From: Anaeramoeba ignava BMAN
Taxonomy: Eukaryota; Protista; Anaeramoebae
Direction of reading: 5' to 3'
DNA: 64,000 bases
Assembly (NCBI GenBank): GCA_028826165.1
Contig: JAPDFW010000111.1
Location: forward strand, 62,001-126,000
Positions within the stretch are counted from its first letter, which is position 1, and each line of letters starts with the position of its first letter. The position numbers were made by a program, and so were the translations under genes. Below, one piece after another: positions 3,741 to 63,790 of the stretch. Under the pieces are notes generated by a model. The model was not told the DNA's origin. It was given only the letters and a program-made list of their open reading frames with translations, and did no database searches.

Positions 3741-9916
<6,176 letters not shown>

Positions 9917-18133: not shown

Positions 18134-18239
18134 ATTAACATCAAATTAAAAGAAAAAAAAAACAATCAAAATGAATTCAATTTTTTCTTTTTTATTCTTC
18201 TTTTCTTTTTTAGATTGAATCTTTTTAAAATGAATTCAA
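18134..18239 (+). repeat. Direct repeat copy 2 (3' end of the ankyrin-BTB gene)
   Basis: Matches 14567-14648 apart from an internal length difference. Confidence 0.85.
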
Positions 18240-21200
18240 AAAGTGAAAATATCATCATCAAAAATTTTGAATAATGAATTTTTTTCTTCAAAAACTTCTT
18301 CTTCTTTATAAAAATTATCGAAATAATCTTTTCTGATAAATTGTTCATCTTTTTTAATAAATAAAGCTTTTTCTCTATCATAAAAATTCAAATAATAACC
18401 CAAAGAAGTGCTAGTGTTTAATTGATAATAATCATGAGCATCACTCAATTCCATAACTAAAGTGCTAGTAGAAAATTGTTCAATTTCATCAAAATAAAGA
18501 AAACGGACAAATTGGCGAATAGTTTCTGGTTGTTTTCCACTATAATCTTGGACTTGATTCGATTCATCTTTAACAGCCATAAACATTCCTCTAAACAAAT
18601 CACTTCGAATTCCAAGAAGATCTTTATGAACCTTGATTTCTTCTTCTTGGCAAATAATGGTGAAATTTTTGGATTCTTCATCTTCAAAAATTTTTGCCAA
18701 ATCAGAAATAAGTCCTTGTCTTCCAATTTTTCTATTAAAATCAAACCATCCAATTTCTTGTGCAATTTGTTGAATGATTAAACGATCTTCTTCTTTTTCA
18801 ATTATTCCTGAATAAACAAATCCAAGAAATATTTTTGCTTCTTCGATTGTTTTGTCTCGAATTTTAAGAAGAACTTTTTGGACAGAATCTTTTCCAAATC
18901 GTAATTTGAGAATAAAAGAATGGAGTTGAATATTTCCTCCAATTACATGTAAATCAATATCAGTAAATTCTTTTCTTTCAAAATAATTTTTAAAGTCTTC
19001 AGATAAACTATTATATGTTTTGAGCAATTCATTTAAATTTGGATCAAAATTCCTTATTGGATCATGAATTGGATCCTTTTTTTTATTTATAATAAATTTA
19101 TTATTAATTTATAAATTCCATTTTGTTTTGTTTTTTAAATTGAACAAAAAAAATTTATTAACTTGTGCTAATTTTTCATTAAATCCTGTATTTAATAAAA
19201 TTCTAAGTGATTCCCATGCATTTTTTTGAAATAAAACTGTAAGAAGTGAAACCTTTTTCAATATAAAATTACAATTAATTAAAAATTAAAAATTACAAAT
19301 TACATTAAATATTAAATTAAATACTCCCTATTTTTTCAAATCAACAAATTAATTAATTTCTTTTTAAATATTTTATTTATTAATTAAATTGTTTTTTTTT
19401 TTACATCCTAAAATAATTTTTAATTTAAAAATCATAAATTTTTTTTTAATTAACTAAAAATACTTTCACAAAATTACAATTTGCTCCATTAAGAATTAAT
19501 TCTCGAATAATTTCAGGTGGAGAATTAATTGAGCAAGCAAAAAATAAAACCTAAATTTAAAAATTAAGGAAAAAAGTTGATTTTTTTAATAATATATAAT
19601 TACATCCTTAAAAATTAAAAATTAAAAATTAAAATTAAAATTCATTTTAAAATTAAAAATTAAAAAAATTACATTTAAAGATGAAATATTTGCTCCTTCG
19701 GAAATTAAAGTACGAATTAATTCAGGATTTTTAGAATATTCACAAGCAATATATAATGGTGTAAAATTCTATAAATAATTCAATTCAATTCAATTAAATT
19801 CAATTAAATTCAATTAAAAAATAAAAATTTACTTTTGACTAAATTTATAAAAAAATTTATAAAAAAATTTATTAAAAAATTTGTTTTTGTTTTTGTTGTT
19901 TTTGTTATTTCTACATTTTTTAGATTAATATCATATCCAGATTCGACTAATACTTCTATATATTTTGGTGAACTATCATATCCACAAACAATATGAATAG
20001 GAGAATCTCCCTTTTATATTTATATTTATATTTATATTTATTTATTTAAATATTTAAATTTATAAATTAAAAAAAGATTTTTACAATCTATTTTTTATAT
20101 CAAAAATTTTTTTTAGAATAAATCATCTTATTTTTTATATAAGAAAAAACAAATTTTTACAGTCTTTCAAATTCAAATTTTAAATTCAAATTTTAAATTT
20201 TAATTTTAATTTTAAATTCAAATTTTAATTTTAAACTAACATTAATAACAAGATTTGATGAATGATTTAAAATGAGTTTAATTTTTTCTTCATTCTCTTT
20301 CCTCATACATAAAAAATGAAGAGGTGCATTTCGCTAAAAAAATAGAAATAAAATTAATTATTTATATTTTTTTGAAAAAAAAGGAATTATTACATTCTAT
20401 TTTAAAAATTAATTTTCTATAAAATGAAAGAGAAAAAAAAATAATCAAAATATTATTTACAATATCCTAGTTAATAAATTAATTAATAAATTAATAAATA
20501 AAAATATTTCCTTTTTTTTTTTCGGAAATAAATTATTTATAAATTGTTTTACTCCAATTTCACTCATTTCTTTATTAAAAGAAAGTAGAATTTGTAACAC
20601 TCTAATATCTGTTTTTCCTTGTAAACAAGCTAAATGTATTGGTAAAATATTCTTTTCAAAAGAAAAAAAATTTAAAATAATTTTGTTTAGAAATTCTAAT
20701 AAAGAAAAATAATTATTTAATTTTACTTTCTTTTGTATTTTTAAAATATTTTTTTTTGGTGTTAGAATTTTTTAAATCAAAAAAAACATCAATATCAATA
20801 CATTCTATTTTATTTTTGGAAAATTATTTATTTATAATTTAATTTTTAATTTTTAAATTTAAATTTACATCAAAATTCATAGGATTTTCTCCATATTTAA
20901 TTAATTCATTAATAATTTCTGGATTTTGTTTAGAGTAACAAGCATAATGCAAAGGTGTTCTATCTTTATTATTCTAAAAAAAAAATAAAATAAATCAATT
21001 TATTATCAAATAAATTATTCCATTTTTATACTCTTTGATTTTTTAATGGATTAAATTTTAAAAGTTCTTTCAATGAATCCAATCTAATTCCATATTTCAT
21101 AGCTAAATGTAATGGGGTTTCATTCTAAATTAATCATAAATAACTATTTAAAAAAAATTTATTGTTTTAAATTTTAAAATTTTACTTCCTTCATTTTCAA

Positions 21201-24200
21201 TAAAAATATTAAATAATAATAATAATAACAATAAAATAAATTTAATTATTTCTTCTTACATTCTTTTTATTTTAAATATTTTTATTTTAAATATTTTTCT
21301 TTTTCTTTTCAAAATATAATTACATTTTTTGAATCTACTGGAATATAATTTGCAATTTTTGATATTGAACTTGGATTTGGATTACTTTTACAAACTAAAT
21401 GAAGACATGTTTCTGAATTCTTTTTTTTTGTTAAAGAAAAAAAAATAATTTAATTTAATTTAATTTAAAATGAGTAAATTCCGAAAATTCATTCCAAAAA
21501 AAAAAAATTTTTTTTTACTAATAAATCTTTAATTTTTGCTCCTTGTGAAATTAGAAATTCTAATATATCAGAATTTGTTTGATTTAAACATAATAAATGA
21601 AGTGGTGTTTGATTCTAAAATTGAAAAAATTTAAAATCAATTTTGTTTTCTAAATGGAAGTAATTTTTTTATTACATTCTTTTTTATCAATTAAAATAAT
21701 TATAATTCCAAAAAAAAAAATAATCAATAATTTTAATTTTATTTACAATCTAAATCCAAAAATATTTTTGTTTTAAAATTTTTATTTGAAAAATTAATTT
21801 CAAAAATCTCGTTTTACATTTTTAATATGAACTCTTGCTCCTTGTTTTATAAGTCTTTCAAAATATTCTTTTGGAAATGAATTCCAACTCAAATAATGTA
21901 ATGGTGTATTTCCCTATTAATTTAAAAAAGAAAAGAAATGATTTTAATTTTAATTTTAATTTCAATTTTAATTTTAAATAATTTACATTCTAATATTTCT
22001 CTTTTAAATGAATATTATTCTAACAAAAATTATTTAATAATCAATTTTACTTTCTATTAAAAGGAAAAAAAGTTATTTTGAATTTATTTTTATAAAAGGA
22101 AAATTTATTTACATCTATTGGAGATGGTTTTGCTCCTTTTGATAATAATAAATTGATACTTTCTAATCCAATTTTTTGATTTTGACATGCAAAATGAAGA
22201 GGAGTAAGTCCCTAAAAAAAAAACAATATAATTTCAAACTTAAAAATTTATTTTCTCATTTTTTATTTTTTACATTCTAAATTTTTTTTTTTAAAAATAA
22301 CTTTCAATTCTCAAAAATTAAAAATATAAATTTATATACAATCTATTTTATAAAATTTTTTTTTTAAAATTTAATCTTTTCAAAAATATAAAATTATAAA
22401 ATTATACAGTTTCACAATTTGGATCAGAAGAAAAATTTAATAAAGTATTAAGAATTTTAGTTTGTGAATGTTTTAAGCAAGCAATATGAAGAGGTCCAAA
22501 TTTCTAATATTTTTTAATTTTATATTTAATTTAATTTAATTTAATTTAATTTAATTTTTTGAATAAATAGAAATAATCCTCACTTTCTAAAAAAAAAACA
22601 ACAACCAAAAAATTTTTAAAATTAAAAATAAATAGAGAATAGATTATAGAATAATTTACTTTCTTTATTATTTTTTGATACAAATTAAAATTATTAAAAT
22701 GAAATTGTTTTTGTTTTTGAATTCAAATACAGTTGTAATTCTATAATTTGCTCCTTTTTGAAAAAATAATTCAATAACATCTTCAGGATAATCATTATAA
22801 ATTGCATAATGAAAAGGAGTTTCATTCTTAATTTAGAAATAAAGATTAATTAAAAATAAGAAATGAATCAAAATCTTAAAATTTATTTTACACTCTTTTT
22901 TTTTGATTATCAAAATAAAACATTTTTGTTTAAAATATTGTTTAAATAATGAATACAAACTATAGTTTATTTTTAAATTATTTTAAAAATGTATATAAAT
23001 ATAAAATAAACAATTTTAAATGAAATAATAATTTTGATACATTCGTAGCATTAGGATTTGCATTATTATTTAACAGGAATTTAATAGTTTCTGGTAATAA
23101 TTTTTTCAAACAAGCATAATGTAATGGAGAAAAACCCTAAATTAATTTTTTTCACCAAAAATAATTGATTATTAAATTCTCTAAAAAACAAAGGGAAAAT
23201 TATTTATTTCTTTTTTTATTTCAATTACATTCTTTATAAAAGAAAATATTCAAATTAAAATTGTGAATTTTCTTCTACAAAAGATGAATATAAATATAAA
23301 TCTTACGTTCTAAATAATAAATATCATAATAAATATCAAAATGAAGAAATGATAAAATTTACATCAAAATCATTAATTTTAGCACCTAAAGAAATTAATT
23401 TTTTAATAATTTCAAGATTATCAATATTATTGGATTCACAAATGAAATGTAAAGGTCTTTTTCCCTATTATAATATTTGAATATATTTAATAAAAAGGAT
23501 AAAAATGAGAAATTATTTACTTTCTATATTTATTTTTTCCCAATTAAATATTAATTAAAAAAAGTGTTTTGTTTTGTTTTGTTTTTATTGAAATAATTTT
23601 GTACAATATTAATATTTGGATTTGCACCGAAATCTAATAAATTAATTGCATTTGATTGATCCCATAATTTTTCATTAACGTTTTGAATCAAAAGAGAAAA
23701 TAATCCATTTTTCTATAAATATAAATATAAATATAAATTAATTGAAAATAAAAACAGAAATATTTTACATTCTTTTTAATTAAAAAATATTTAATAAATT
23801 TCTTAATAATTCTTAAAAAAAAATAAGAAAAAAAATAACACAATTACTCCCTGAAAATTAATATAAAATAATAATGATAATAATAAAAATAAAAATAAAA
23901 AATTCTTTCTTTTCAAATTACAAATTGTCGATCTAATTCAAATTTAGAAAGTAATAAAAAAGTAGTTTTTGGATCATTTTTTTCAAGAATATAATAAAGT
24001 GGTGTATGATTCTAAAATCAAAATAAAATAAGTATTATTCAAAATTAAAAAAAAAAAGACAAAATTTACAAACTATAAATTATCATTTTTTTTAAAATTA
24101 ATAAATATTAAATTTCTTTCTAATTATTTTTAAAGAGAAAAAATTAAATCAACTTTCTATTTAAATTTAATTTTTCCAAAAGAAAAACAAAGACAATTAT

Positions 24201-27200
24201 TAATAAACTATCCTTTTTCTTTTTAAAACAAAAATAAGAATAATAAATTTACATTTTTCAGATTAACATCAGATTCTTTTTCTAATAACAATTTTATTAA
24301 TTCAAATTCTGGATAAAATTTGCATGCATAATGTAACGGTGTCCATTTCTAATAAAATTATAATTTAAAATTTGTTTATTTTTTTTTTATTTCTCTTTCA
24401 AAAAAAAAATGAAAATGAAAATGAATCAAAAATACTTTCTAAAATTATCAAAAACAAACAAATTTCAATATATATAAATCATTAGTTAAATAAAAGTTTA
24501 TTTTACATTCTATATATAAATCCAAAAAGAATATAAAATTAAATAAAATTTTTATCAATTAATGAAACTTATTACATCAATTTCATTAATTGAAGATCCT
24601 GATTCTAAAAGAAATTTAATAGATTCTAAATTTAATTTCTTCCAACAAGCAATATGAAGAGGTGTATGTCCCTTTATTAAATTTAAATTTTTAAATATAT
24701 AAATATATAAATTTAATTTTATGAATTTTGATGTTACATCCTTTTTTGTTTTTTTTTTGTTTAAATTTTAGTAAATTAAAAAACAAAAGAAATAAATTCA
24801 AAAATTAAAAATTTTACTTTCTAAAAAAAAAGAAAATTTATATTTAATAATTAAAATAAAAATTAAAATTAAAATATTCTTCTTTTAAATTAATTTATAA
24901 TTAATTTACATTTTTTGAATTAATTTTTGATCCATTTTGAATAAGTAATTTCAAAATTGAAAGCTCTGTTTTATTTTTTGCTGCTATATGTAATAATGAA
25001 TTTTTCTAAAAATATAAACAAAACAAATTTTTTGTTTTTCAAAATTATTATTCTAAATTTATAAATAAAAAATTTTTACAGTCTTCATTTAAAAAAGAAA
25101 AGAAAAGAAAAAATTGGAGTTTAAATGATAATTATTTTTAATAAAGATGAACAAAAATACTTTCTAAATATAGAATAAATATTTTCCTTTTTTTTTTTTT
25201 CAAAAATAAAACATAAATAAAATACATTTAATATATTAAGATCTGCTCCATTTTGAATCAAACATTTAATAACATCAAAACTACATTTTTTTTTAATTGC
25301 AATAAAGATTGGTGTTTCTCCCTAAAATATTTTCAATATATTAATTAATATCAAAAAAAAAGCAAAAAAATAAAATGATTGAAAATATTGTTTTATTCTT
25401 ACAAACTATTTTTTAAAGAAAATGAATTAATTTTATTTCTAAAAGGAAAAAGTGGAACAACAAATTTACTTTCTAAAAAGAAAAAATAATTAATAAAAAA
25501 TTTTTGTTTTGATAAATGAAAATATTTACATCAATCAAATTAATTGTTTCTTTATCAATTAGAACACTTATTTCCAGAAAACTTAAACGAAAAGAAACTG
25601 CAATATGAAGAGGAACTTGATTCTATAAAAATTAATTATAAAATTCAATAATCAACATTTATAACATTTTATCTTTCATTTTTAATATTTACATCCTTTA
25701 AAATAATAGCATCAATGGAAAATATGAATAATAAATATTTTTTTTTTTATTCTTTAATAAATTTAATTTTGAATTACTTTCTATATTTTTTTTTTGAATA
25801 AAATGTAAAAATATTTGAAATATTAAATTTTAAATACATTTAAAGAATGAATATCAGCTCCTTTGTTTATTAAAAGATTAATGATTTGTGATGAAGATCT
25901 TTTTTTACAAGCTAAATGAAGCGGAGTGTTTAACTTTTTTTCAAAAATAAATTATAAATTTTCTACTTCAAAAAAAATATTAATTTGATTCAAATTACTT
26001 TCTATAAATAAACAAATAAATTAATAATTTTTCATATTAAATGAAAAAAGAAAATGTTAAATACATTCTAAATTAAAAATTAAAAATTAAAAATTAAAAA
26101 TAAATTAAAAATTAAAAATAAATTAAAAATTAAAAATTAAATTAAAAAAGCAACATTTTGTTCATTAATTTTAGCACCAGCTTCAATAATCTTCTCAATG
26201 AAAATATAATCATTTTTATGTTCACAAGCAATATGTAAAGGAGTATCTCCCTTTAAAATACAAATATTGGGAATTAATACAAGAAAATTTATTTTATTTT
26301 CTTTTTTACATCCTTTTTGAAAAATGATTAAAATTAAACTTAAGCAATTTTAAATTTCTAAAATTACTTTCTAAAAAAAGGTTTATTTTATTTTGTTTTT
26401 TTGAGGGAAATTTTCAATTTAATAATAAAATAATAATAAAAATATAAATTTCATTTTTAATTTACATTTTTCAAATTAACATCTGCTTTTTCTGAAAGTA
26501 GAAGATCTAAAACTGAAATTGGAACCCAATTTTTACAAATTAAATGTAAAGGAGTATCTTTCTATAACATAAAAATAAAAATCAATCCAAATGTTTAAAG
26601 ATAATAATTTTAATCTTTCTTTCTTTCTTTCTTAAATAAAAATTTAAAAATTTACTTCCTAAATTTTTGGATTTTTGATAAATTTTGAATTAAAAAAAAT
26701 TGATAATAATTATTTACGTTCTAAATTATATATTTTTTTTAATAAATTTTAAATAAATTTTAAATATTTTCATTTACATTCGTTGTATTAACAAGAGCAC
26801 CTGCATTAATTAAAAGTTGAATAACTTCAAAATCTTGTTGAAATGAACAAGCAATATGAAGAGGAGTAAAATTCTTTTAAAAGAAAAAAAAGGTAAAATA
26901 AAATTATTTTTATCAAGAAAATTATTTACATTCTTTATATTAATTTTAATATTAATATTAATTTTAATTTTAATTTTAATTTTAATTTTAATATTAATTT
27001 TAATATTAATTTTAATTTTAATTTTAATTTTAATATTAATTTTAATTTTAATTTTAATATTAATTTTAATTTTAATTTTAATTTTAATATTAATTTTAAT
27101 TTTAATTTTAATTTTTTACAAACTTTTTTTTATTTTTAAATTTAAATAAATAAAATAGATAAATTAAAAAATTAAATTTACATCCTTTTTTAAAACAAAA

Positions 27201-27431
27201 ATAATAAGAAATTTAAATTGAAATTGTTTAAAAAAAAATAAATATTACAATCTAAAAAAAAAAAAGAAAAAAAACCAAAATTTATTTTTATTTTAATTTT
27301 TATTTTTATTTTTATTTTTTTGAAATTATTATTTTTTGAATTACAAAATGTTGATGAGCATTTTCTCCTTGTTGAATTAATTTAGTAATTGTTTCAAAAT
27401 CTCCATTCATAAGTGATTGAAAAAAAGACAT
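18236..27431 (-). CDS. Ankyrin-repeat (~27 repeats) plus tandem BTB protein, about 78 exons including about 49 microexons of 3-6 nt
   Basis: ATG at 27431 (exon 27345-27431, MSFFQSLMNGDFETITKLIQQGENAHQHF). About 27 repeat exons, mostly 96 nt (e.g. 26778-26873 NFTPLHIACSFQQDFEVIQLLINAGALVNTTN; 26466-26561; 26155-26250), separated by AG-NNN-GT exons. Last exon 18236-19075 encodes two BTB-like domains (FTDIDLH...LHSFILKLR; KNFTIIC...KVHKDLLGIRSDLFRGMF). All introns are phase 0. Confidence 0.9.
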
Positions 27432-27500
27432 TATTGTTTTTTAAAAAAAAAAAAGGAAATTGAAAAATAAAAAAATGAAAAAAAAATTTTGCCATTTCTT

Positions 27501-29817
27501 TCAATTTTTTTCCAAATACAAATTTTTAATAAAAAGAAGAAAAGCTTGAGAGGAAACATCAAGTAAAATTTTGCGAAATCTTTTTTGAGAACGATGAAGT
27601 TTTTTCATTTTTTTAAGTAATAGATCAGTTTTTTGAAAAGAAGAAATATTTTTAGTATGTTTAAGTGAAATTTTTTCAGCTTTAATTTGAAGAATTCTTT
27701 TAGTTTCTAGTCTCATTTCCAACCAAACTAATAATATTTTAACTTGATTTATATTTTGGATTTGAGAATTTGAATCAAAAGAAGAAGTGATATTTTTAAG
27801 AACAAGTGATTTTGAGAATTGATTAAAAATTGAGTCATTAATGATTGAAGTAAATGATTCAATTCCACAAGCAAGATTGATTGATGTGTTTAGAGCTGTC
27901 AATATTATATCAAAATAATCTAAAAGCCATTCCTTTTCAAATTTTTTGTTTTTTTTTGAACCGAATTTTTGGATTGTTTTATTTTTGAGAAATAATTTCA
28001 AGGAATCATCAAAAATCGAAAAATTATAATCTGCATAAAATAAATGTGATTCAGTAATCTTCAATTTGGGTAATTCAGATTCGGGAATATTTTTAATTCC
28101 ATTTTTTTGTAAATTTTCTTGTAATTGAAAATTTGCAAAAAATGAAATTTGTTTGAATTCATTGATCCATTCAATTATTTGTTGTGGTGAAATTATCGGC
28201 ATCGAATTCAATATCATTATTTCATATTCTATTTTGTTTGAATGAAGATCATTTTTCATTTGGTTTGTTTCTTCAATTATCATTTGATTTTTTTCTTCTG
28301 TTATTGTTTGATTTTCTTGAGGAAATAAAGGAGAAATATTTTGATTATTTTGATTTTTTGATTTTGTTCGTTTTCTTTTGATTTTTTGATTTTCATTTTC
28401 ATTTTCATTTTGATTTTCATTTTCATTTTCATTTTGATTTTGATTTTCATTTTCATTTTCATTTTGATTTTCATTTTCATTTTGATTTTCATTTTGATTT
28501 TGATTTTGATTTTGATTTTCATTTTCATTTTGATTTTGATTTTGATTTTGATTTTGATTTTGATTTTGATTTTGATTTTGATTTTGATTTTGATTTTGAT
28601 TTTGATTTTGATTTTGAATTTGATTTTGATTTTGATTTTGATTTTGATTTTGATTTTGATTTTAATTTTGATTTTGATTTTGATTTTGATTTTGATTTTG
28701 ATTTTGATTTGGTTTTGGTTTTGATTTTGATTTTCCTTTTTCTTCATTTTCACTTTTTACTAGGCCAAGTGCAGAAGAAAATAATTCTTTTCTTTTTTGA
28801 TAATATAAATTTTTTACTTGAGTTGTACTTTTAGATCCTCCTAATAAAATTGCGACTTGATCCCAATTTCTACCGAAAGCAAGAACAAATTCATGAAATA
28901 GAATAATTTCTTCATCTCGCCAAATTAATTGATCAAAATGTTTAATTTGATCATCTTGCATTGCAAATCTTTTCTTTTTTCTTTGTTTGTTTTCAAATAT
29001 TCTTGGTTTATTTGTTGATTCATTTATCATTTTAGCTTTAATTTTTGGATCACGTGGTATTTTTGATCTTTCTTTTAATGATTTCCAAAAATTACTTAAC
29101 GCTTTGAGACCAAATTTAATATTTGGTTGAAGAAAAATAATTTTTTTATCTGTAGTTGATTTTTTGGGATTTTTTGGATTTCTTGGATTTTTTGGAGTTT
29201 TTGGAGTTTTTGGAGTTTTTGGAGTTTTTGGATTTTTTGGAGTTTTTGGATTTTTTGGATTTTTTGGAGTTTTTGGAGTTTTTGGAGTTTTTGGATTTCT
29301 TATTCTTTCCTTTTTCGGTTTTTTTTCTTTTGGTTCTTTTTTTCCTTTTTTTTTTGTTTTTTCATCAACTTGATCGAATTTGATTAGATTTTGTCGATTT
29401 TCAATTTTTCCTGTTTGTAAATTTATTAATACTAAACCTTTTTCATAAAATTGAAAGAATTCTTGAGTTGAATCTTGATTAAAATGTTTTTCTATTTGTG
29501 GTAATTCATGAAAAGGAGGTAAAATTATTTTGGAAGAAATTTTTGATAAACTTGATTTTTTAGTGTGTAAAAAAGAATGATCAAATTTAATTGGTTTTCC
29601 TGTTTTGAAAGCATTCCAAAGATCGATCTTGATAAAAGCATTAAATTGATTTGTTTTTTTCTTTTGTTTTTGTGTTTTTTTTAGATTGAAGACTTTTTGA
29701 TTTGCTTTTTTTGATTTTTGTTCAAATATTTTAAGGAAAATTTCTCTTTCAAATTTTTCATTTTTGAGACGAGATTTCATTTCTTTCTGGTTTATTTGTT
29801 CAATTTCTTCTTCTCTG
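27501..29817 (-). CDS. SANT/Myb-domain protein (5' end unresolved)
   Basis: WRDEEIILFHEFVLAFGRNWDQVAILLGGSKSTTQVKNLYY is a SANT domain; PKT/PKN repeats are present. ORFs 28662-29780 and 27501-28283 are in the same frame, separated by a TAA in a CAA-AAT tract. Confidence 0.7.
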
Positions 29818-38200: not shown

Positions 38201-40767
38201 ATGCCTATTTTCATCAAACCTATTCAAACTATCAAACGAAAATAAGAAATGGTACAGTTCACTTGAAGAAACAAATTGGATCAATCATTTAAAAACTATC
38301 ATTTCATCATCAATACAAATTGGAAATTACTTGAACAACAACACATCAGTATTGATTCAATCAGCAAACGGAAGAGATCGGAGTGTTACAAGCGATACTC
38401 CAATATTATGTCGTTTAGAAGGAGACTCAAATGTGTTTATACGGCGAATAGAAGAACTTTATAATAATCAAAATGAATGGGTTTTAAATTCAAGAATAAA
38501 AAATAAGGAAACTTGTTTTCCTTTGAATAATTTGGAAGTTTGGACAGAAGATGGATTTGTCAAAGTTTATCAAATCGTTCGCCATAAAACTTGCGAGGAA
38601 ATTGTAAGAGTCGTGACAGACTCAGGTTCTGTTGATGTGACAAAAGGTCATAGTTTGTTGGATTTAAATGGAAATTGTGTTAAAATTGATAATGTTGATT
38701 TGGGTCATCCAATTCTTCACCATAAATTCTCTTCTTATCACCAAAAAAATACCAATTCTTCCCTCAAAATATCAGATAATTTAAACGCGCTTTTTGTGAA
38801 TAACCAAATTGCTTGGAGTTTTGGTTTTTTTGCTGCTTTTTCTCAGTGCGAATCTGGAAATAATTGGAAAATTACTCATTTTGATCACAATTTAATATTA
38901 AAATTCAAAAGTATTTTCGAGAATATTTTCATCAATTTAAAGGATAAAAACCAAAATATCAAGATGTCAAAAAATAGCAATCAAAGCATTTTTAAAATCA
39001 CTTTCAACATCGAAAATATCAATAATCGAAAATATGAATTATCATTAAATAACCCATTTTCTTCAAATCAAAAAACACTTTCAGAGCAATTCAATAAGTT
39101 TTTATGCAATCAATTTTTCCATTTTTCAGGAGAAAGAAAAATTCCTGATTTTGTTTTGAATTGGAATTCTCAATTTCAAAAGTCATTTTTTGATGGATTA
39201 GTTGGAAATAATTTATCAAAACCCAAAAAATTACAAAATCAAAAAATCAAGATTAACTCAAAAAGCAAATTATATATTTCAGGAATATATCTTCTTGTTG
39301 AAGAAATTGGGGAAATGAATATAAAAATAGAATTCAATGAAAAAAGTGAAGAATTTGAAATTGAAGTTTCAAAGAAAAAGGAAACAGAAAGAAATCAAAA
39401 GAAACCAAATCTATCAAGTTGCGTGAAACAAAAAATAAAAATAGGAGTTTCAAATCAATATGTATATGATTTGTCAACAAGAAACGAGCATTTTCAAGCA
39501 GGAATAGGAAATATTATTGTTCACAATACAGCACAATTATCATCATTAACACAATTACTTGAGGATCATTTTTATCGAACAATTCGAGGATTTGAAATTT
39601 TAATTGAAAAAGAATGGATTAGTTTTGGGCATGATTTTGGAATTTTTCGAAATTTTTCCAAAAAGAAAAATAATGAAAAACCAAGTTATTCTATTTTTAT
39701 TCAATGGATTGATTGTGTTTATCAAGTTCTTCATCAATTCCCAAATGCTTTTGAATTTAATGAAGATTTACTGATTAATATTCTTGAAAATCTTTTTAGT
39801 CTTAAATTTGGAACATTTATTTTTCCTTTTGAAAAAGATCGAAAGGAAAATAATATTCATTTAAATACTTATTCACTTTGGACTTCTATTAATGAGAATT
39901 TGGATTTATTTGTTAATCCTATGTATCAACCTGTTAAAGAACCTCTTAGACCAAGTGTTTTTACTCGACATATTGCATTTTGGGAAAGGTAGATAAATTA
40001 AATTAAAATTCATTTATAAAATTAAAATTAAAATTAAAATTAAAATTAAAATTAAAATTAAAATTAAAATTAAAATTCATTTATAAAATTAATTTTTAGA
40101 TATTATATGAAAAGTTTATTTTCTCAAAAAATTCAAGAAGAAACAAAAACAATTCAAAGAATTCTTCAAGAATGTTCAAAATTATCTCAAGAAATGAGTT
40201 TATTTGAAAAAGAAAATATTAAAGCATTAGAATATCAAAATAGATTATTGAAAGAATTAGAAGAATTAAAAAAACAACAAAATGATGAAACTCCTTTAAA
40301 TTTTTCAAGTTCAGATGAAGATGATGAAAAAGAAAAAGAAAAAGAAAAAGAAAATGAAAATAATAAAGAAAATGAAAAAGAAAAAGATAAAAGAAAGTGA
40401 TAATGAAAATGATAATGAAAAATGAAAATGAAAAATGATAAAAGAAAATGATAAATAAAAAATGATAAAGAAAATGAAAATGAAAATGAAAAAGAAAAAG
40501 AAAAAGATAAAGAAAAAGAAAAAGAAAATGAAAATGAAAATGAAAATGAAAATGATAAAGAAAATGATAAAGAAAAAGATAAAGAAAATGATAAAGAAAA
40601 TGATAATGAAAATGATAAAGAAGATGATAAAGAAAAAGATAATGAAAATGATAAAGAAGATGATAAAGAAGATGAAAAAGAAAAAAAAGATAAATAATTT
40701 TGTTCGTTTTAAAATTATCTTTTCAAGATTTTTTTTAAAACAAATTCTAATTTCATTTTTAAGTTAA
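35292..40767 (+). CDS. Myotubularin-related (GRAM + PTP-like) protein with an intein, probably a pseudophosphatase
   Basis: GVLRLTNYRL (GRAM), DGWQIYNPIEEFKRF, WRISQYNDEYKLSETYP, SRFLNRIPVLVW, FYRTIRGFEILIEKEWISFGH, FIQWIDCVYQVLHQFPNAFEFNE and a C-terminal coiled coil. The 3' end is uncertain. Confidence 0.92.
38382..39527 (+). mobile_element. Intein 3 (382 aa) in the myotubularin P-loop
   Basis: GRDR|SVTSDTPILCR...VDVTKGHSL...YVYDLSTRNEHFQAGIGNIIVHN|TAQLSSL: Ser1, block B, His-Asn end and +1 Thr. Confidence 0.95.
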
Positions 40768-56339: not shown

Positions 56340-59300
56340 ATGGATAATGATAATAATAATAACCAAATTGAAAATGCAAATCAAAATCAAAATGAAAATG
56401 AAATGAAAAATTTAGAAAAAAAAGTAACAAAAAATTTAATTAAAAATTATTCAAACCTTTTAAATGGAAATTCATTTAAAGATTTTTCAATTTTTGTTGA
56501 GAATAAATCAAATCCTTTTGAAATTAAAGTTCATAAATCAATTTTATCTTCAAGATCTCCTTTTTTTAATGAGTTTTTAAGGCAAGAATCTCTTTTTATT
56601 TCTTTAAATCAATTTAATAAAAAAGAAATGGAATCAATTTTGAGTTATATTTATTATGGAAATATTTCTTTTGAGAATCAAGAAAATCTTTTTCAATTAT
56701 TAGAAATTTCAATTTATTTTAAATTAAATTTATTGAAAAGAAATTATTCAAAAATTTTAAATTCAATTAATTATTCAAATTTTTCCAATTTTTATTCCAA
56801 AATCGAAATTTAAATTCAAATGAAATTGAAATAAAATGTTTTGAATTAATAAATCAAAATTTTTCCCAAATTCAGAATAATGAGAATTTATTCAATTTAA
56901 CTAAAGAAGAAATTATCAAATTTATTCAATTTAAACAAGAAAAAAAAGAAATTTTTCAATTTGATTTTTTTCAATTTTTAAATAATTGGATTAAAAAAAG
57001 AGTTAATTCATTAAGATTAAGGAAATTTAAGAACAAAATGAATGCAAAGAAAAGATTATTTCATTCTTTTTTTTCATTATTTGATAAAGATTCAATTTCA
57101 AAACAAGATTTTGATAAATTAAAACAATTTGAAATTTTTCTTCCAAATTCTTTTTTAATTCATTTTGAAAGAACTATTTTTCAAATTCAAGATCAAGAAA
57201 ATCAAACAAAAATCAAAGAAAAAGAAAAGGAGAATCAACAGATGAAAATTGAAATTGAAGAGAAATTGAAGAAAGAAAAAAAAGAAATTGAAGAGAAATT
57301 GAACAAAGAAATTGAAGATAAAAACAAGGAAATTGAAAACAAAGATGAAGAAAATCAAAATCTTAAATCTGAAAATGAAAAGAAAGATAAGATTCTCAAA
57401 CAAAAAGATGAAGAAATCCAAAATCTTAAATTATCATTTGAAAAAGAAATTGAAAAAGAAAATCAAATTCAAATTCAAATTGAAAATCAAAATCAAATTC
57501 AAAATCAAAATCAAAATCAAAATCAAAATCAAAATCAAAATCAAAATGAAAATGAAAATCAAAATGAAAATGAAAATGAAAATGAAAATGAAAATGAAAA
57601 TGAAAATCAAAATCAAAATCAAAATCAAAATCAAAATCAAAATGAATTGTTGAAGATTTTTTCAGATTCAGAAATTATTACAGAAGAAGAATATGTTAAG
57701 AAATTACAAGAATGGATAAATGATAATGAATTCTTTTCTAAAATGAAAAAAGGATTTTCAGCAAAAAGAGATGGATTTAATTCTCAAAATTGGCATAATA
57801 AAGTTGATGGGAAAGGAAAAACATTATTTATTATCAAAACAAAAGATAACTTTATTTTTGGAGGTTTTACTCAAGTTGGATGGACAAATGATAAATCAAA
57901 ATGGAGTGTTAAAGGAGGAAGTTATGGATTTATTAATGATCCAAATGCATTTATTTTTTCATTAAGAAATGATAAAGGGGATAGAAAACCAGATAAGTTT
58001 ACAATTAAAAAAGGAAAAGAAAAATATGCAATTAAATATGATTTAAATTGTGGTCCAAGTTTTGGATGTAAAAATAAATAATTTATATTTAATAAATATT
58101 TATTATTATAATTAAAATTAAATTAATAAATAATCCAAAATATTAATATAATCAATAATATTATTATTTCAATTTAAAATAAAATTAATTTTAAATTAAA
58201 TTATTATTAATTATTATTAAAATTAATTATTTATCTTTATTAAAATAGTGAGTAAATAATTTATATTTAATAAATTATAATTAAAATTAAATTAATAAAT
58301 AACCCAAAAATATTAATATAATAAATAATATTATTATTTCAATATAAAATAAAATTAATTTTAAATTAAATTATTATTAATTATTATTAAAATTAATTAT
58401 CTTTTATTAAAATAGATCGTAAATAATTTATATTTTAATAAATATTTATTATTATAATTAAAATTAAATTAATAAATAATCCAAAATATTAATATAATAA
58501 ATAATATTGTTATTTCAATTTAAAATAAAATTAATTTTAAATTTAATTATTATTAATTATTATTAAAATTAAATATTTATCTTTATTAAAATAAATAATT
58601 TATATTTAATAAATATTTATTATTATAATTAAAATTAAATTAATAAATAATCCAAAAATATTAATATAATAAATAATATTGTTATTTCAATATAAAATAA
58701 AATTAATTTTAAATTAAATTATTATTAATTATTATTAAAATTAATTAATTATCTTTATTAAAATAGTTGGTAAATAATTTATATTTAATAAATATTTATT
58801 ATTATAATTAAAAATTAAATTAATAAATAATCCAAAAAATATTAATATAATAAATAATATTATTATTTCAATTTAAAATAAAATAAATTTTAAATTAAAT
58901 TATTATTAATTATTATTAAAATTAATTATTTATCTTTATTAAAATAGGGGAGTAAATAATTTATATTCAATAAATATTTATTATTATAATTAAAATTAAA
59001 TTAATAAATAATCCAAAAATATTTATAATCAATATTATTTCAATTTTAAAATAAAATAAATTAAAAATTATTATTAAAATTAATTATTTATCTTTATTAA
59101 AATAGTTAGTAAATAATTTATATTTAATAAATATTTATTATTATAATTAAAATTAAAAATTAAATAACCCAAAAATATTAATATAAAAACAATAATTTTA
59201 AAATAAAATAAATTTTAAATTAAATTATTATTAATTCATTAAAATTAATTATTTATCTTTATTAAAATAGATTGTAAATAATTTATATTTAATAAATATT

Positions 59301-60340
59301 TATTATTATAATTAAAATTAAATTAATAAATAATCCAAAAATATTAATATAATAAATAATATTATTATTTCAATATAAAATAAAATTAATTTTAAATTAA
59401 ATTATTATTAATTATTATTAAAATTAATTACTTATCTTTTATTAAAATAGATGGTAAATAATTTATATTTAATAAATATTTATTATTATAATTAAAATTA
59501 AATTAATAAATAATCCAAAATAATATAATAAATAATATTATTATTTAAAATTTAAAATAAAAATAAATTTTTAAAATAAATTATTATTAATTATTATTAA
59601 AATTAATTATTTTATCTTTTATTAAAATAGTTGGTAAATAATTTATATTTAATAAATAATTATTATTATAATTAAAATTAAATTAATAAATAATCTAAAA
59701 TATTAATATAATAAAATAATATTATTATTTCAATTTAAAATAAAATTAATTTTAAATTAAATTATTATTAATTATTATTAAAATTAATTATTTATCTTTA
59801 TTAAAAATAGTTCGTAAATAATTTTATATTTAATAAATATTTATTATTATAATTAAAATTAAATTAATAAATAATCTAAAATATTAATATAATAAATAAT
59901 ATTATTATTTCAATTTAAAATAAAATTAATTTTAAATTAAAATTATTATTAATTATTATTAAAATTAATTAATTATATTTTATTAAAATAGCTCGTAAAT
60001 AATTTATATTTAATAAATAATTATTATTATAATTAAAATTAAATTAATAAATAATCTAAAATATTAATATAATAAATAATATTATTATTTCAATTTAAAA
60101 TAAAATTAATTTTAAATTAAATTATTATTAATTATTATTAAAATTAATTATTTATCTTTATTAAAATATTTATAGGTGATCTTCTGTTAAATTCTAAATT
60201 ACAATCTGGTTATTCAAATTTTGGTTTTACTTATAATCTACCTAATGGAATTAAATATGGAACAAATGAAGCTCAAAAGTTATTTAGCTGGTTCTTTTAA
60301 TAAATGGATTGTTGATGAACTTGAGACTTATTTCATTTAA
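56340..60340 (+). CDS. BTB-BACK-coiled coil-TLDc protein whose TLDc domain is interrupted by a microexon array
   Basis: BTB (KDFSIFV...IKVHKSILSSRSPFF); TLDc (FSAKRDGF...HNKVDGKGKTLFIIKTKDNFIFGGFT...AFIFSL...GPSFG); donor GT at 58068; last exon 60176-60340 (DLLLNSKLQSGYSNFGFTY...YLAGSFNKWIVDELETYFI). Single-base indels near 56740-56785 and 60278. Confidence 0.88.
58068..60175 (+). repeat. Array of about 12 near-identical ~175-bp GT...AG intron units separated by variable 3-nt exons
   Basis: Junction pattern aaaatAG-NNN-GTaaataat: TGA 58249, ATC 58416, none ~58592, TTG 58767, GGGA 58948, TTA 59106, ATT 59271, ATG 59451, TTG 59631, TTC 59811, CTC 59992. Confidence 0.93.

Positions 60341-61545: not shown

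Positions 61546-63790
<2,245 letters not shown>

Follow-up and report, generated by a model that had tools for sequence, protein, structure and literature searches.

Can the variable residues of a binding surface be encoded at one codon per exon and, if so, does their variation arise by splicing or in the DNA? The question is raised by an ankyrin-BTB gene of the anaerobic amoeba Anaeramoeba ignava BMAN (NCBI GenBank assembly GCA_028826165.1), located in a window of 64,000 nucleotides (nt) that comprises positions 62,001 to 126,000 of contig JAPDFW010000111.1 and whose forward-strand numbering is used here unless another contig is named. Between the exons for its ankyrin repeats the gene carries elements of the form AG-NNN-GT, most often two per junction, each offering a single codon to the β-hairpin of the repeat. 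An earlier note on this DNA had taken these triplets for exons and had suggested that skipping, or pairing across repeats, would create combinatorial binding surfaces. The analysis described here makes it likely that they are real one-codon exons, normally included through short-intron splicing, and that the hairpins vary mainly in the DNA.

Architecture of the gene

The exon model was built by a script from the window DNA, and single exons or natural paralogs served as queries in homology searches. It runs on the minus strand from 27431 to 18236. Upstream of the last exon it has 28 large exons together with 47 of 3 nt and two of 6 nt, so that there are 78 in all, which encode a product of 1224 amino acids (aa) with no internal stop. 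All 77 introns are GT-AG and in phase 0. Their median length is 68 nt, with 76 of them between 53 and 99 nt and one of 187 nt, and those located 5′ of, between and 3′ of the triplets are alike in donors and lengths. The earlier note had described about 49 one-codon exons, introns of about 55-100 nt and a gene limit at 19161. The number of microexons holds, although two of the 49 have 6 nt; the introns are of 53-99 nt apart from the one of 187 nt, and the limit was misplaced, since coding continues across an 87-nt intron into the BTB exon, to 18236. The ten triplets it gave as examples are all in place, preceded by AG and followed by GT, and the five junction peptides it quoted are rebuilt by the model.

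The elements are far too frequent to be accidental. A count on the minus strand over 18900-27500 gave 53 cases of AG-NNN-GT but one to nine for each of the other spacer lengths between 0 and 9; four of the 53 are chance occurrences within the coding sequence of large exons. Of the elements in the gaps between exons, 46 have GT[AT] as the donor, where 1000 dinucleotide shuffles gave 1.4 ± 1.2 (maximum 6). None of the 47 triplets is a stop codon, whereas 10% of the trinucleotides in the gaps are (P ~0.007), and the third base is A or T in 45 of the 47. The window has about 18% GC, and the BMAN genome has been reported to contain 80.65% AT, rising to 91.86% in introns (PMC11550330).

Two triplets are present at 20 of the 27 junctions, as the note had claimed for nearly all of them; the other seven differ, with four triplets at one junction, one at two, none at two, and a 6-nt exon at two, once followed by a 3-nt exon and once alone. 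Compared pairwise, the 96-nt repeat exons are on average 50% identical in DNA, which indicates that the duplications of repeat exons are old and hence that the triplets have been retained for long in this gene.

Paired one-codon exons in transcripts of paralogs

Evidence for inclusion comes from paralogs. The EukProt proteins of A. ignava are, according to the record names, open reading frames (ORFs) called on assembled transcripts; such assemblies follow the major path, one per paralog, and hide minor isoforms. The NCBI models of the paralogs omit all triplets; models of A. ignava match loci of the assembly residue for residue. EukProt protein P0368 differs from NCBI model P0009 solely by two additional residues at seven of seven hairpins, and P0151 differs from P0048 solely by K-S at one hairpin (1/1). 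In the two paralogs together, two residues absent from the NCBI models are thus added at 8/8 comparable junctions.

The source of these residues was located with junction patterns built from the transcript-derived proteins (exon end, GT..AG, codon, GT..AG, codon, GT) and searched throughout the assembly, 42.84 Mb in 147 contigs. Four of six patterns, belonging to three paralogs, gave a single match, in the expected gene and in the right order, with none in the control: the K-S junction of P0151 at C93:196019-196164, the I-R and R-G junctions of P0368 at C56:321375-321535 and C56:320131-320282, and the T-V junction of P0269 at C101:195438-195598. Shifted donor sites were considered as another source and rejected, as they would yield V-C, V-K or V-N instead of K-S, I-R, R-G and T-V. 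Therefore, two consecutive 3-nt exons reach mRNA in A. ignava. From the identical layout of the paralogs we infer that the triplets of the window gene are included as well.

As a separate observation, transcript-derived P0062 and genome model P0361 are identical to residue 853 and then differ in their BTB ends, which reflects either an assembly chimera or a true exchange between paralogs.

Residues encoded by the microexons

In the product of the window gene, a BTB domain comes after TPLH-type repeats of 33-34 aa. Their period is mostly 34 aa if the microexons are counted in and 32 if they are left out. A period of 34 also prevails in the intronless paralogs of A. ignava, where it accounts for 83 of about 180 spacings, and 32 is not among their ten commonest values. 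The triplet residues lie four and three positions before the T of TPLH, and these sites are the two most variable positions of the hairpin, with 3.4 and 3.8 bits in 142 hairpins of intronless paralogs. In designed ankyrin libraries the two β-turn positions flanked by Asp1 and Gly4, numbers 2 and 3, are randomised (PMC4308713); judged by their place in the repeat, the microexon residues correspond to positions 2 and 3 of the designed ankyrin repeat proteins (DARPins). Hence the proposal that the triplets are exons for two hairpin residues of the kind randomised in DARPins is borne out, both by their presence in paralog transcripts and by the variability of these positions.

For a transcript-derived paralog, AlphaFold2 places the inserted residues in the loop before helix 1, and in one repeat they sit between two bridge positions. 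At junctions of the window gene that are short of microexons, the hairpin codons are carried by the neighbouring exon or by one of 6 nt, next to a short intron.

Distribution and evolution of the layout

The same layout occurs in A. ignava paralogs on at least six contigs (C83, C66, C65, C30, C24 and C1), and a pattern of two consecutive elements gave 1310 matches over the whole genome against 642 in the control. It is also found in A. flamelloides, whose mean identity with A. ignava is 37.3% (PMC11550330). The A. flamelloides gene of P0092, an Ank-BTB gene, contains TAG-NNN-GTA 23 times, compared with 0-6 times for other spacer lengths, the elements being clustered at the hairpins in runs of two to six. 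A second gene has one triplet, which completes N-K-F-G-D-T-P-L-H in both strains. The occurrence in both species suggests that the layout is older than their split, the A. flamelloides side being known from DNA. An ankyrin exon of 93 nt (L047:16091-16184), unannotated and preceded by a long triplet run, was also noticed within an annotated intron of P0092.

Recent duplicates in the C83 paralog give a view of ongoing change. Six substitutions fell in microexon codons and all six change the amino acid, where about one or two would be expected from intron and exon divergence (Poisson P 0.001-0.014, a rough value with hand-estimated tree lengths). In the same duplicates one deletion, reaching from intron to intron, takes out exactly one codon. 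From these substitutions and the loss of a unit, hairpin diversity looks to arise in the genome. The comparison of paralogs suggested by the note returned the architecture it asked for and, in the C83 duplicates, an excess of codon change. The triplicated repeat units of this paralog (G000:C83:343179-347137, plus strand; L012-L014, L023) present a further observation: nearly every exon base change is nonsynonymous (for example 4/4 and 2/2), hinting at selection for change over the whole repeat.

Proposed splicing model and alternative explanations

We propose that the gene is processed by intron definition. Every intron of 53-99 nt would be recognised over its own length and removed in turn, and a triplet would first be joined to one neighbour as the adjoining intron leaves. 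Since the introns would be recognised end to end, a 3-nt exon need not be recognised alone. In C. elegans, microexons with short flanking introns need no extra regulation, and exon definition across microexons is thought to be sterically blocked (PMC8378409). The usual mRNA would contain both triplets, and the repeats it encodes, of 34 aa, would have the D/N-x-x-G hairpin in full. As the layout is common to A. flamelloides, it would have originated before the species split, in one ancestral repeat, and would have spread by duplication of repeats and genes. The hairpin would then vary mainly in DNA, through substitutions in lone codons and through gain or loss of whole intron-plus-codon units, a change that is always in frame.

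Several results weigh against this model. The introns of the window gene have no outstanding branch-point motif, and the splicing route is thus inferred. Searches for a transcript or protein of the window gene, the last of them covering 0.55-1.75 times the query length, turned up none. Of the junction patterns of P0269, Q-K-D/Y/A was without a genome match and A-Q-N/D/A matched inside another gene; the build may be different for these two. Intronless paralogs are likewise most variable at the triplet positions, so that introns are not required for variability, and the C83 rate test counts six events.

It could be argued that the triplets are not spliced in, giving 32-aa repeats, or that the window copy is silent. 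The NCBI models of the paralogs skip every triplet, and the missing product would agree with a silent copy. However, the transcript-derived proteins contradict those models, the frame is open through 78 exons and the elements are far above chance, and we consider this reading very improbable. A different proposal, that of the earlier note, places diversification at the level of splicing: skipping, whether regulated or stochastic, together with pairing across repeats would produce many binding surfaces from one gene. In-frame skipping is indeed allowed by the phase-0 state of all 77 introns, and in a paralog the form skipping all triplets folds as well as the included one (pLDDT 72.5 vs 71.2 in single-sequence AlphaFold2), so that the fold is no bar to skipping. 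Moreover, up to six triplets per hairpin in A. flamelloides, and arrays of 15-30 triplets in TLDc genes, exceed the needs of a canonical loop. Against this, both residues are present in genomic order at every one of the comparable transcript junctions, which leaves combinatorial skipping and cross-repeat pairing unsupported. Skipping would remove residues without exchanging them and would demand introns of at least 130-215 nt, whereas 76 of the 77 model introns are shorter than 100 nt; and the window gene carries just as many triplets as the 34-aa period requires, with none in surplus. Since assemblies hide minor isoforms, we keep splicing-level diversification as an explanation, although an improbable one.

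A neutral origin deserves more weight. In an AT-rich genome with short introns, the introns would have multiplied by local duplication and survived only in the one loop tolerant of insertions and deletions, with no benefit. Such an account fits full inclusion and competes solely with the adaptive part of our model, in which any benefit of the layout is presumed. Hairpins are equally variable in many intronless paralogs, and tandem arrays of near-identical intron-plus-triplet units show such duplication in progress. On the other hand, exactly two triplets have been kept at most junctions, over old repeats of 50% identity, in many paralogs and in two species, a retention that demonstrates selection on inclusion but not on the introns; the rapid amino-acid change in the C83 triplets is also at odds with neutrality. 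We regard the neutral account as quite possible, somewhat short of an even chance. Real one-codon exons that are normally included, with variation mainly in the DNA, remain the explanation that we hold to be likely.

Course of the gene

All features of the gene are on the minus strand, and microexons are given by their first bases. Exon 1 (27345..27431) contains the ATG and the N-terminal capping repeat, 29 codons. Four 3-nt exons in a row follow the cap (26930..27251; 27251, 27184, 27122 and 26932, encoding I, D, F and N), with a third intron of 59 nt and then the 187-nt intron, which carries a simple-repeat expansion. The 27 repeat exons (19163..26873) measure 87-108 nt, 16 of them 96 nt; each begins with the residue at or just before G-x-TPLH and stops at the repeat end. 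Between 26720 and 23769 lie ten pairs of 3-nt exons, at 26720/26658, 26370/26312, 26067/26001, 25780/25695, 25472/25405, 25163/25082, 24820/24740, 24509/24438, 24156/24072 and 23850/23771, which encode NE, KD, NK, KD, KF, KT, KD, NK, KF and GN. A lone 3-nt exon (K, 23521..23523) is then met in a gap of just 140 nt that holds two introns. It is followed by six pairs (21676..23309), at 23309/23231, 22959/22894, 22662/22586, 22342/22276, 22053/21989 and 21749/21678, encoding NN, FS, KK, IN, KN and IN.

The next junction (21420..21518) has a single 99-nt intron and no microexon, and an extra hairpin residue is carried on the following exon. After a pair at 21262/21188 (N, E; 21186..21262), a second junction without microexon provides an internal control, with one intron of 58 nt (20974..21031) and the hairpin residues within the following 105-nt exon. 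Further downstream are a pair at 20804/20729 (N, K; 20727..20804), a 6-nt exon at 20466-20461 (D-I) followed by a 3-nt exon at 20396-20394 (N; both within 20394..20466), and a pair at 20163/20087 (T, I; 20085..20163). A 6-nt exon (S-K, 19833..19838) that replaces two 3-nt exons is another internal control. A lone 3-nt exon (D, 19604..19606) lies 5′ of a degenerate repeat, and the last pair is at 19407/19327 (D, G; 19325..19407).

The 87-nt intron separates the last repeat exon from the last exon (18236..19075; 279 codons and stop), which was assigned by acceptor and frame and encodes a BTB/POZ domain (Pfam PF00651, E 1.2e-12). Its relatives, when looked up, were mostly A. ignava or A. flamelloides proteins annotated with ankyrin and BTB domains. 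Judged from this ankyrin and BTB domain content only, the product is probably a Cullin-3 substrate adaptor. An ORF of 260 aa without Pfam match (27501-28283, minus strand) ends 70 nt upstream of the ankyrin start codon.

Triplet arrays in other genes of the genome

Longer triplet arrays occur elsewhere in the genome. Four tandem BTB-TLDc genes on C1 (L003-L005; G000:C1:1057851-1073241, minus strand) carry an array at the same phase-1 position, with 15, 25, 30 and 16 triplets. If translated throughout in phase 1, the arrays would encode loops free of stops in which Y, W, D and F abound, and 78 of the 86 triplets have T at the wobble position, a coding-type pattern. A shorter array is found in L007 (C1:942330-942795). 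At the end of a coiled-coil gene, after the coiled-coil exon (L001; G000:C1:409309-412856, minus strand), 32 triplets form a phase-0 array without stops and with A or T always final; the locus also includes an ATT repeat of 1.2 kb and four units whose donors have decayed. As candidate diversifiers, the TLDc and coiled-coil arrays rank above the window gene. That intron-bounded single codons are in Anaeramoeba a general device for diversifying the binding loops of BTB and other ubiquitin-ligase receptors, through codon units gained, lost or exchanged in frame within the DNA and perhaps also through combinatorial splicing, is a tentative idea that we think rather unlikely.

The window itself contains a TLDc gene (58068-60175, plus strand) with tandem, near-identical introns of about 180 nt and variable triplets at a phase-1 site after GPSFG. 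One element of 4 nt (58948-58951), one unit without triplet and an extra base near 60281 in the downstream exon indicate either a decayed copy or assembly errors. Elsewhere on the plus strand of the window, a V-ATPase subunit gene (5543-8721) contains two inteins of the Hint/homing-endonuclease kind and a myotubularin gene (38331-39992) contains one intein; Anaeramoeba inteins have been published (PMC10710043).

Significance and comparison with known systems

Tiny exons and micro-exon gene families are known; what is new here is the pairing of one-codon exons at ankyrin hairpins, with transcript support from paralogs. The literature searched, whose coverage leaves out most subscription journals, contained no description of the layout and none of microexons in Anaeramoeba. 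With consecutive 3-nt exons splicing comes close to its physical limit, and the cases known are scattered; by pattern count, many hundreds of such exons would exist in this genome, a natural system in which to test directly how a spliceosome copes with a donor and an acceptor just three bases from each other. The public protein models of Anaeramoeba leave out those residues of a large gene family that contact the ligand. The layout raises the question of whether boxing lone codons between introns speeds the evolution of a binding surface. If the general device were real, a protist would own a receptor library written codon by codon, in ankyrin hairpins and in the TLDc loops described above.

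Exons of 1 nt have been described in APC11 and VPS55 (PMC8831610), and a 3-nt exon in cytohesin-1 (PMC6314551). Such plant and animal microexons of 1-3 nt resemble those of the window gene in lying between GT-AG introns, in being missed by annotation and in having intronless paralogs alongside. However, they are isolated, one or two per gene, while the window gene has 47, in consecutive pairs, at a fixed structural position of each repeat and throughout a family. Ankyrin genes with one exon per repeat, such as vertebrate ANK1, and Ank-BTB adaptors are also known, and share with this gene the repeat-sized phase-0 exons and the order of ankyrin array and BTB; here, in contrast, the repeat is split into 32 + 1 + 1 codons. 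Dscam-type genes contain arrays of mutually exclusive exons. The likeness is limited to the idea of receptor diversity by splicing, as the window gene lacks alternatives for each position and the paralog transcripts hold both triplets.

The micro-exon genes (MEG) of Schistosoma have 10-20 exons, mostly of 15 nt (6-81), separated by introns of 0.1-5 kb; they encode secreted proteins, and alternative isoforms have been verified (PMC10526429). The window gene fits their series of tiny, poorly annotated exons that are mostly multiples of three, but its exons are single codons, its introns of 53-99 nt do not match the long introns of MEG, and its product is a folded ankyrin-BTB protein. The engineered DARPin and ANK-N5C libraries randomise positions 2 and 3, which are the microexon positions, and vary in addition positions 5, 10, 13 and 33, which in the window gene are encoded by the large exons (PMC4308713).

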